Below, one piece after another: positions 59,147-62,100 of a stretch of DNA of 64,000 nucleotides; within the stretch, counting starts at the first letter, position 1, and each line of letters opens with the position of its first letter. Below the pieces are notes generated by a model, which worked only from the letters and a program-made list of their open reading frames with translations, searched no databases and was not told where the DNA came from. Location: the NCBI GenBank assembly GCA_039096225.1, contig JBBPEB010000015.1, positions 1,736,001 to 1,800,000 of the forward strand. The letters run 5' to 3'. The stretch is from Blastocystis sp. Blastoise. Lineage: Eukaryota; Protista; Bigyra: Opalinata. Made by a program: the position numbers and the translations under genes.

Positions 59147-62100
59147 TTATTTAACATTAATATCACAATCATATTGTCTATAATTTGAGGGTATAATTGA
59201 ATTATCTACTTGACTTGATAATAATGGATGTTTAAACAGAAAAGGAATAGAAATCAAATGAAGAACGGGCTGGTTAAATGAAAAGGAAAAAATAGATTTA
59301 CTTGAAATAGTATCAATTGTCTTTGAAGGAGAAAGAGGTATATAGTAATATATTAAGAATATATATATAATATAATTTAATTAATATAATTTAATATAAT
59401 ATAATTAATATAATATAATATAATATAATATAATATAATATAATATAATATAATATAATATAATATAATATAATATAATATAATATAATATAATTAATAT
59501 AAAAGGATATATGAATAGATGTATTATATTGATCTTCTATATTAAATGAGACTGGTTTATCATGTAAATAGCTCTGTAAATAGAAAGAAGGGACCAATGG
59601 ATGATATAAGAAGGAGTATATTTATTAAGAATGTATATAATAAATAATAAATAATAAAATAATAATTTATTAATGAATTCTATAAATAGCATATATATAT
59701 ATAAATAAAATACAAATAAAATAAAATATAGAATATAGAATAAAATAAAAGATATATTTTCTCTATACATATCATGAAATTGTTTATTAAAATGACGAAT
59801 GCACCAATGAGTGTTAAATGTACAGCGATGACGCGGATGGTCACATATTTCTGTTTGTTGATTTTCTTGTGAAATACAATCATGACAGCCAAATTGAGGA
59901 AATATTAATATACGATTTAAAGAGAATGCTAATAATAAAGCATATTTGAGAGCAGTTCGTTCTTCTACTATATATAGAAGAGATATTATATTAATACACT
60001 TGAATTCATAAATGTAATAATTTGATAATTAAGTAATAAAAATAATTAATAAAACAATATCCATAATAATAATAGATAAAACAATATATATATATATATA
60101 AGCAATATTTATAATAATAACATACAAAGAGTTGTATGTATATCTAGTGAGTCATAAATAAGATATTTATTTCTAGTTGAAGAATAATAATCATCTTTAT
60201 CATAATAATATAATCCTAATTCTTTAAATCGATACATTTTGGCGTCAGACCCTACGATCCAATTATTATGTAATATAACACATTCATCACCTATATATAT
60301 ATAATAAAGAGATTACAATCATTTGTAGATATCTTATATATTATTTTAATGAACATTCAGAAATATAACTGATATATATACCAAAATATACATGAATATA
60401 AAAATATTAATAATTAGGAGAAAAAACTTGAAGAAAATATAGGTAATAATGATAATAATAATAATAATAATAATAATAATAATAATAATAATAATAATAA
60501 TAATAATAATAATAATAATAATAATAATAATAATAATAATAATAATAATAATAATAATAATAATAATAATAATAATAATAATAATAATAATAATAATAAT
60601 AATAATATATACAGTCCATATCTTCTTTATAAACACGATGATTATGTTCAAACCAATACCAACCTGAAGGAAATATATTAATATCTAACAATTGAACTTT
60701 TAAGCCCCTACTCACCATATTATTAATAGCTAAGTTAATAGCAGGCTGCTGACGAATCACTTTATAAGCTTTATATATAAACCAAGCACGAGTAAACATC
60801 TTCTTGGAATAAATAGTATTCTTCGCATATCTTTACAGAGATATAATATATATATATTCATTAAATAATAAATAAGTAAATAATAAATAAATAATAAATA
60901 ATAAATAAATAATAAATAATAAATAAATAATAAATAAATAATAAATAATAAATAAATAATAAATAAATAATAAATAATAAATTAAATAAAAAATTAATAA
61001 AATTAAAAATAACTATCTATATATACATAAATCCACTATTTCTATCATTTGAGAAATCATCATCTACTTCTCTTTGTATGTGAATATCACAGTCAATACA
61101 AGTAAAATAAGGAAAAGGATTCTTAAAGAATACTATATCACTATCAGTTAGTAACACATTATATCCGAATTGAAGGCAATATAATACTGCTAATGTCTTT
61201 GAATTCACTTTATTAATAAACTCAATAGTATCATAATCTGAAGATTCATCCATATTATCTGATAGTTTTATAGACAGAAGAACTGAAGGTATAGATAAAG
61301 AAGTCACTTCCTATGTATATATATAAGAATAAGAATAAGAATAGGAATATAGAATCCTAATAATATAGAATCCTAATAATATAGAATAATAATAATAACA
61401 ATACTATAAAAATAATTAATCTAATAATAAAATAATAACATAATAATAACATAATAATAAAATAATAATAAAATAAAATAAAATAATAATCTATACCTTA
61501 TAAGCTTGAGGATCCAGGGTAAATGCAATAAAATTAGTAATATTCAATCGTTTTATAGAATATGAATAAAATGAAATAAATTGAGGTAAGAACCCATGAT
61601 CAAAAACACTTATAATAATATTATTATCTATAGAATATTTACTTAATAAGAATTGTAATTCTTTAGGTGGAGAAGGAATAGAATTCTTAAAGAAATAATA
61701 AAAATGATCTTTTTTAATAGATTTAGATTGAAAGATCTGTTTTTTAATCTTTTGACGAATTGATAATATTTCCTGTTCTTCAACATATTCATCAGCATAT
61801 AAATGTATTCTATCGGGAGACATATTCAATGTATCTTTTGGATTATTGGATGTACTAAATACATCTTTTGTAGAAGGTATAGTACGAAGATGATTCGAAT
61901 TACCAGATGCAAAACTAGAAGAACTAAATGTATTTTTTAACTCGGCTAACTCATCTAGAAATGAATGAATATTTATAATTAAAATACTCAAGTAATATAA
62001 CAAAAATAATAATTATTAATTTAAGAGTATTTAACTATATATATACTCATTGCTGAATCACGTTTTAAAGATGGTAAAAAGGAATTCGACTATAAAAAAT

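Follow-up and report, generated by a model that had tools for sequence, protein, structure and literature searches.

Two adjacent spliced AT-AC introns in a GT77-like glycosyltransferase gene of a tortoise Blastocystis

AT-AC introns are already known in Blastocystis. In subtype ST1, 346 U12-type introns were found in 319 genes together with all snRNAs and proteins of the minor spliceosome (Gentekaki, 2017; PMC5608401), and a later survey of ST1 counted 253 minor introns, 77% of them AT-AC and 49% in phase 0, and raised recent gain as a possibility (Larue and Roy, 2023; PMC10639083). The genome paper on the tortoise strain, in which tortoise and mammal Blastocystis proteins average 40-42% identity, makes no mention of U12, AT-AC or minor introns (PMC12129017). 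A preliminary description of a 64,000-nt stretch of DNA from Blastocystis sp. Blastoise (hereafter the window) pointed to two neighboring AT-AC introns in a glycosyltransferase gene. It noted that minor introns are reported from some Blastocystis subtypes, which holds for ST1, and found the pair surprising on the premises that such introns usually occur once per gene, are depleted in phase 0 and are concentrated in conserved information-processing genes. These premises fail in the genus and, because of the ST1 figures, two adjacent phase-0 AT-AC introns should be regarded as typical of Blastocystis (PMC5608401; PMC10639083). The finding is real and mostly known; what it adds is RNA support for minor introns in the tortoise branch of the genus.

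Two spliced AT-AC introns and their host gene

The nine exons of the gene (Table 1), joined by their coordinates in a frame check, give 1878 nt and 625 aa with the only stop at the terminus; exons 1-5 are modelled, and the RNA check in that part covers only the intron at 60612-60291. Exon 4 places the protein in the GT77/PF03407 family, with a score of 48.8 bits against a Pfam cut-off of 22 (E 1.1e-12) and DSD as the DxD motif. A Pfam search with exons 7-9 alone gave no match, and a structure search found no solved relative. Homology searches were run exon by exon rather than with the joined spliced model, and the alignment used for the tree was merged from exon-wise profile matches. The body of intron 5 (60444-60607) is mostly microsatellite, with about 55 copies of TAT, and the convergent downstream neighbor at 57947-58525 on the plus strand is an Rtr1/RPAP2-like gene (PF04181, E 1e-6).

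Table 1. Exon model of the GT77-like gene and its two AT-AC introns (window positions)
Feature	Positions	Strand	Description
Whole GT77 gene	59147-62328	-	9 exons; six GT-AG introns followed by two AT-AC introns
Exon 1	62134-62328	-	
Exon 2	62047-62089	-	
Exon 3	61497-61954	-	
Exon 4	61027-61310	-	core of nucleotide-diphospho-sugar transferase domain, PF03407, GT77-like, DSD motif
Exon 5	60613-60830	-	
Exon 6	60126-60290	-	
Exon 7	59756-59967	-	Cys-containing C-terminal domain, ends YREN
Intron 7 (I1)	59616-59755	-	U12-type AT-AC, 140 nt, phase 0, donor ATATCTTT, branch box TTCTTAAT
Exon 8	59511-59615	-	105 nt, 35 aa, starts SFLYHPLVP; between both minor introns
Intron 8 (I2)	59345-59510	-	U12-type AT-AC, 166 nt, phase 0, donor ATATCCTT, branch box TTCTTAAT
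Exon 9	59147-59344	-	last coding exon, genome-encoded TAA; transcript contig reaches 59128

The preliminary description had proposed looking for spliced RNA across the AT-AC ends, and both junctions occur in a single Logan contig (X1 record 4, 484 nt, 0 mismatches). This contig maps to 59128-59344, 59511-59615 and 59756-59906, segments that are contiguous in the contig itself (12-228, 229-333 and 334-484). The junctions 59756/59615 and 59511/59344 are exact at the AT and AC ends and the flanking bases allow no slide, the evidence being one contig from one study, of a run type guessed as RNA, that shows presence rather than efficiency. A further contig links 60290 with the end of exon 5, showing that the GT-AG intron upstream is spliced as well; runs X2 and X3 held no contig covering the GT77 gene. 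The genome contains no intronless second copy of exon 7, and so the spliced contig cannot be put down to a processed copy. The observation of two adjacent spliced AT-AC introns is confirmed, and the coordinates, termini, phase 0 and 105-nt exon first proposed prove exact, the RNA contig joining the same ends.

A profile built from exon 7 and its closest paralog recovered 82 relatives. The motif YREN/SFLYHPLVP, claimed to be rebuilt when I1 is removed, has its counterpart in homologs from other eukaryotes, which read unbroken there as YRE[HSN]-[ST]FL..P.VP (for example YREH-SFLEHPKVP) and match the spliced product. The further remark that the GT-AG alternatives tried run into stops does not hold in general, as stop-free in-frame alternatives exist, such as 59913-59552, 59768-59572 and 59552-59321. 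These were rejected, since their use would remove conserved coding sequence and both the RNA contig and homology contradict them.

Splice signals and minor spliceosome genes

Compared with RTATCCTT, the donor of I2 is exact, while that of I1 (ATATCTTT) has T for C at +6, a position where C stands in the paralog C29 and in most orthologs. The branch A lies 9 nt from the end of I1, with 8 nt from TTCTTAAT to the terminal AC, and 8 nt from the end of I2, which also has an AC acceptor. The donor of I1 and both branch boxes differ from the vertebrate consensus, and the branch-to-acceptor distances are below the vertebrate norm. The body of I2 (59346-59502) is a TATAT microsatellite of 2% GC. Two matches to donor, branch box and AC within this 1.5-kb stretch were reached in none of 2000 dinucleotide shuffles; 15 of the 2000 gave one.

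The assembly (33.34 Mb in 34 contigs; window GC about 21%) encodes U11 (62.9 bits) and U6atac (63.8 bits), both over the Rfam cut-off, a full-length U12 gene that scores below it (46.8 bits, E 6e-7) and, weakly, U4atac (29.7 bits, E 0.045, also below the cut-off). The presence of U11 and U12, on which the preliminary description had made its reading depend, is thereby established. U11 starts with AUAAAGGGC and U12 keeps AGUAAGGAA; with G-U wobbles allowed, these stretches pair with the donors and branch boxes. The U11 gene (L004; G000:C4:1684165-1684293) shares the contig of the window and precedes it by about 52 kb. In the U6atac gene (L002:1501-1617; G000:C21:544821-544937, minus strand), GCC replaces the AAG of the Rfam consensus in the donor-pairing box, so pairing would be lost at +6 and +7, which would fit the relaxed +6 of I1. 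In a metagenome comparison that covered this triplet, GCC was present in 55 of 80 matches to the flanking pattern, several of the contigs coming from human-gut metagenomes, and is therefore widespread rather than peculiar to this genome; the AAG form was seen in five U6atac contigs, possibly host-derived. A literature search on the U6atac variant found nothing relevant.

From the signals and snRNA genes we infer that the minor machinery removes I1 and I2. U11 would read the ATATCYTT donor, U12 would pair with TTCTTAAT through its AGUAAGGAA box with two G-U wobbles, and the AC that follows the branch A by 8-9 nt would serve as acceptor, with catalysis by U6atac, U4atac and U5. The U12-type identity proposed at the outset is supported by RNA junctions, signals, snRNA genes and conservation.

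The suggested genome-wide scan was informative in its strict form, which found the AT-AC pattern in excess (115 matches vs 59 in a reversed control), but not in its loose form (1849 vs 2755); because the genome is so AT-rich the loose pattern is useless, and no intron census is claimed. Seven near-identical AT-AC introns of 65-77 nt (L008-L014, on C8, C13, C14, C23, C26, C30 and C31) were considered as Introners and rejected as such, as all occupy one phase-2 site of a multicopy gene; this family lies within about 120 kb of contig ends. Elsewhere in the window, at 15892 on the plus strand, GTATCCTTTT is a candidate GT-type U12 donor, for which a simple scan found no branch box.

Age of the introns and their class in paralogs and relatives

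Relatives from mammal guts were taken from gut-metagenome contigs of 38-50% GC, called Blastocystis by short introns, synteny and similarity. Three of these loci (L025, L032 and L034) have AT-AC introns at the codons of both I1 and I2, with a middle exon of 35, 38 and 35 aa, respectively; L029 and L037 have AT-AC at I1 only and L031 at I2 only, and the I1 ortholog at L027:3256-3296 is a 41-nt intron that from its sequence has apparent AT-AA ends. Since AT-AC introns stand at the same codons in these loci and in tortoise paralogs, I1 and I2 predate the tortoise/mammal split, a date that bears on the question of recent gain raised by Larue and Roy. The homolog of Capitella is a single exon over aa 105-580 and for this reason cannot date either intron.

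The genome of the tortoise strain contains 11 PF03407 genes, and all 11 have a phase-0 intron after Y[RK]E-x. At this site the intron is AT-AC in four (the window gene, C29, C21a and C20; the C29 exon is 37% identical to that of the window gene) and, as judged by sequence and homology, GT-AG in the other seven, with the ordinary GTATAT/GTATAG donor of the genome. I2 is AT-AC at the same place in five paralogs besides the window gene: C29, C20 and C21a keep both AT-AC introns, and C31 and C21b keep I2 next to a GT-AG intron at I1. The remaining five GT-AG paralogs are without I2, and four of them carry a different phase-2 GT-AG intron about 10 codons upstream. The last coding region of two near-identical paralogs (L019 on C24 and L022 on C14) differs by the clean presence or absence of a 36-nt phase-2 GT-AG intron.

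In a tree of the family (LG+C20, 317 columns, two long branches, eight outgroup proteins including P0036), the seven GT-AG paralogs nest in a clade (99/100) with the AT-AC members C20, C21a and L037, and AT-AC is found in each of the other Blastocystis branches. A single AT-AC clade is rejected (p-AU 0.002) and a single GT-AG clade is not (p-AU 0.27). The simplest reading of the tree would be one or two conversions at I1, from AT-AC U12-type to GT-AG U2-type, within the tortoise expansion; no GT-AG U12 intermediate was found at I1 among the paralogs. The paralogs form a series (both introns AT-AC; I1 converted and I2 kept; I1 converted and I2 lost) that offers a small natural example of conversion from AT-AC to GT-AG major-type introns, a rare route.

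We consider it very probable (about 0.9) that I1 and I2 are genuine U12-type AT-AC introns, removed by the minor spliceosome, present in the ancestor shared by tortoise and mammal Blastocystis, inherited through duplication and later lost or, at I1, converted in some copies. The pair would already have stood in one or a few GT77 genes of that ancestor before they were duplicated. Since then deletion would have removed I1 or I2 from some copies, and one or two conversions, judging by the tree, turned I1 into a major-type GT-AG intron in a single subfamily of the tortoise strain.

The direction of change at I1 could also have been the opposite in the first place, the intron being ancestrally GT-AG and major, turning AT-AC and minor on the Blastocystis stem and reverting in some tortoise copies. 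This is unlikely, though it draws on a distant family member on two Logan contigs (L036 and L124; runs ERR14657274 and ERR14657300), of 25-26% GC and with GTAT-type introns of about 35 nt, that has GT-AG at I1, no I2 and other intron sites in common with Blastocystis GT77 genes. Its source may be a stramenopile-like gut protist, possibly Proteromonas (P. lacertae has 27% GC; PMC12129017) or a deep Blastocystis lineage; a relative outside Blastocystis is probable. The MPDU1 exon next to this gene is 58-61% identical to its tortoise and mammal-gut counterparts; these share 64-70% identity and form a group (90/93) with the outgroup outside. If the organism belongs to a sister lineage, the intron site I1 antedates Blastocystis. 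Because this probable relative has GT-AG there, the class of I1 at the genus stem is unpolarised: the intron may have gone from minor to major in the outgroup, the usual direction, or, with lower probability, from major to minor on the Blastocystis stem. I2 may have been gained on the stem or lost in the outgroup. The major introns of the tortoise genome (donors GTATAT/GTATAG, acceptors TATAG) are few changes away from ATATCY and TATAC, and ST1 minor introns share the phase spectrum of ST1 major introns (PMC10639083). However, a single outgroup cannot polarise the site, the L036 gene is a long branch of unsettled place, introns usually change from minor to major, as they do in the GT77 family itself, and Lin 2010 reports one U2-to-U12 case only (PMC2831892). 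A broader version, in our view improbable too, is that the AT-AC- and phase-0-rich minor introns of Blastocystis come partly from major-to-minor conversion on the genus stem, I1 being GT-AG in the probable sister lineage and ancestrally AT-AC in Blastocystis, and that this short distance between signals, together with the relaxed U6atac box, let introns change class both ways. I1 is thus a site at which a change from major to minor could be checked against Proteromonas and oomycetes.

The GT-AG introns of the paralogs might instead have arisen by loss of I1 and independent insertion at the same codon boundary. The intron bodies are unalignable microsatellite, the intermediate is missing and loss of I1 does occur (L031), and yet the site (x-CAT/AAT followed by TCY/ACA) offers no AG/G proto-splice site and no tortoise paralog lacks an intron there, which makes this quite doubtful next to conversion. 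Splicing of I1 and I2 by the major spliceosome, as for the U2-type AT-AC introns of sodium-channel genes, or by a hybrid route, is very unlikely. The degenerate +6 of I1, a branch box that is weak in a very AT-rich genome and the altered U6atac box could be read that way, but the donors of U2-type AT-AC introns show G at +5 (PMC2831892), a position at which I1 and I2 both have C, orthologs at 40-50% GC keep ATATCCT donors and TTCCTT(A/C/T)A-type branch boxes, and the minor snRNA genes are intact.

Finally, the lineage-specific gain on the tortoise branch that the preliminary description had proposed can hardly be upheld: the host gene is not an information-processing one, both introns are in phase 0, the Capitella homolog is unbroken and the probable outgroup has no I2, but the intron-position comparison that it had itself suggested found both positions shared, with AT-AC at the same codons in mammal-gut loci and deep, divergent paralogs, the I1 site holds an intron (GT-AG) even in the probable outgroup, and intronless animal homologs are uninformative, so that neither recent gain nor an Introner origin fits and only a gain on the genus stem, mainly of I2, would be conceivable.

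Comparison with known systems

As members of the GT77/PF03407 family, the window gene and its relatives have the PF03407 domain with DxD, an N-terminal hydrophobic segment and an HNNW motif, and the C-terminal YRE-SFL..P motif is common to the window protein and Capitella ELT98190; what differs is the 11-member expansion in this genome, for which retaining glycosyltransferase activity is predicted. With U12-to-U2 conversion (Burge, 1998, as described in Lin 2010; PMC2831892) the I1 site has in common one codon and phase, a U12 intron vs a GT-AG U2 intron among homologs, and the direction from minor to major. It differs in starting from the AT-AC subtype, which makes up only 5 of 79 single-subtype conversion clusters in Lin 2010, in the lack of a GT-AG U12 intermediate, and in taking place among paralogs of one genome that keeps its minor spliceosome. 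The U12-type introns of Blastocystis ST1 and ST7 agree with I1 and I2 in AT-AC termini, the ATATCCT donor, phase 0, more than one intron per gene and all four minor snRNAs, whereas the introns described here are longer (140-166 nt vs a mean of 42 nt) and filled with microsatellite, their branch box is shifted to TTCTTAAT and donor position +6 is relaxed, in a genome of 21-23% GC.
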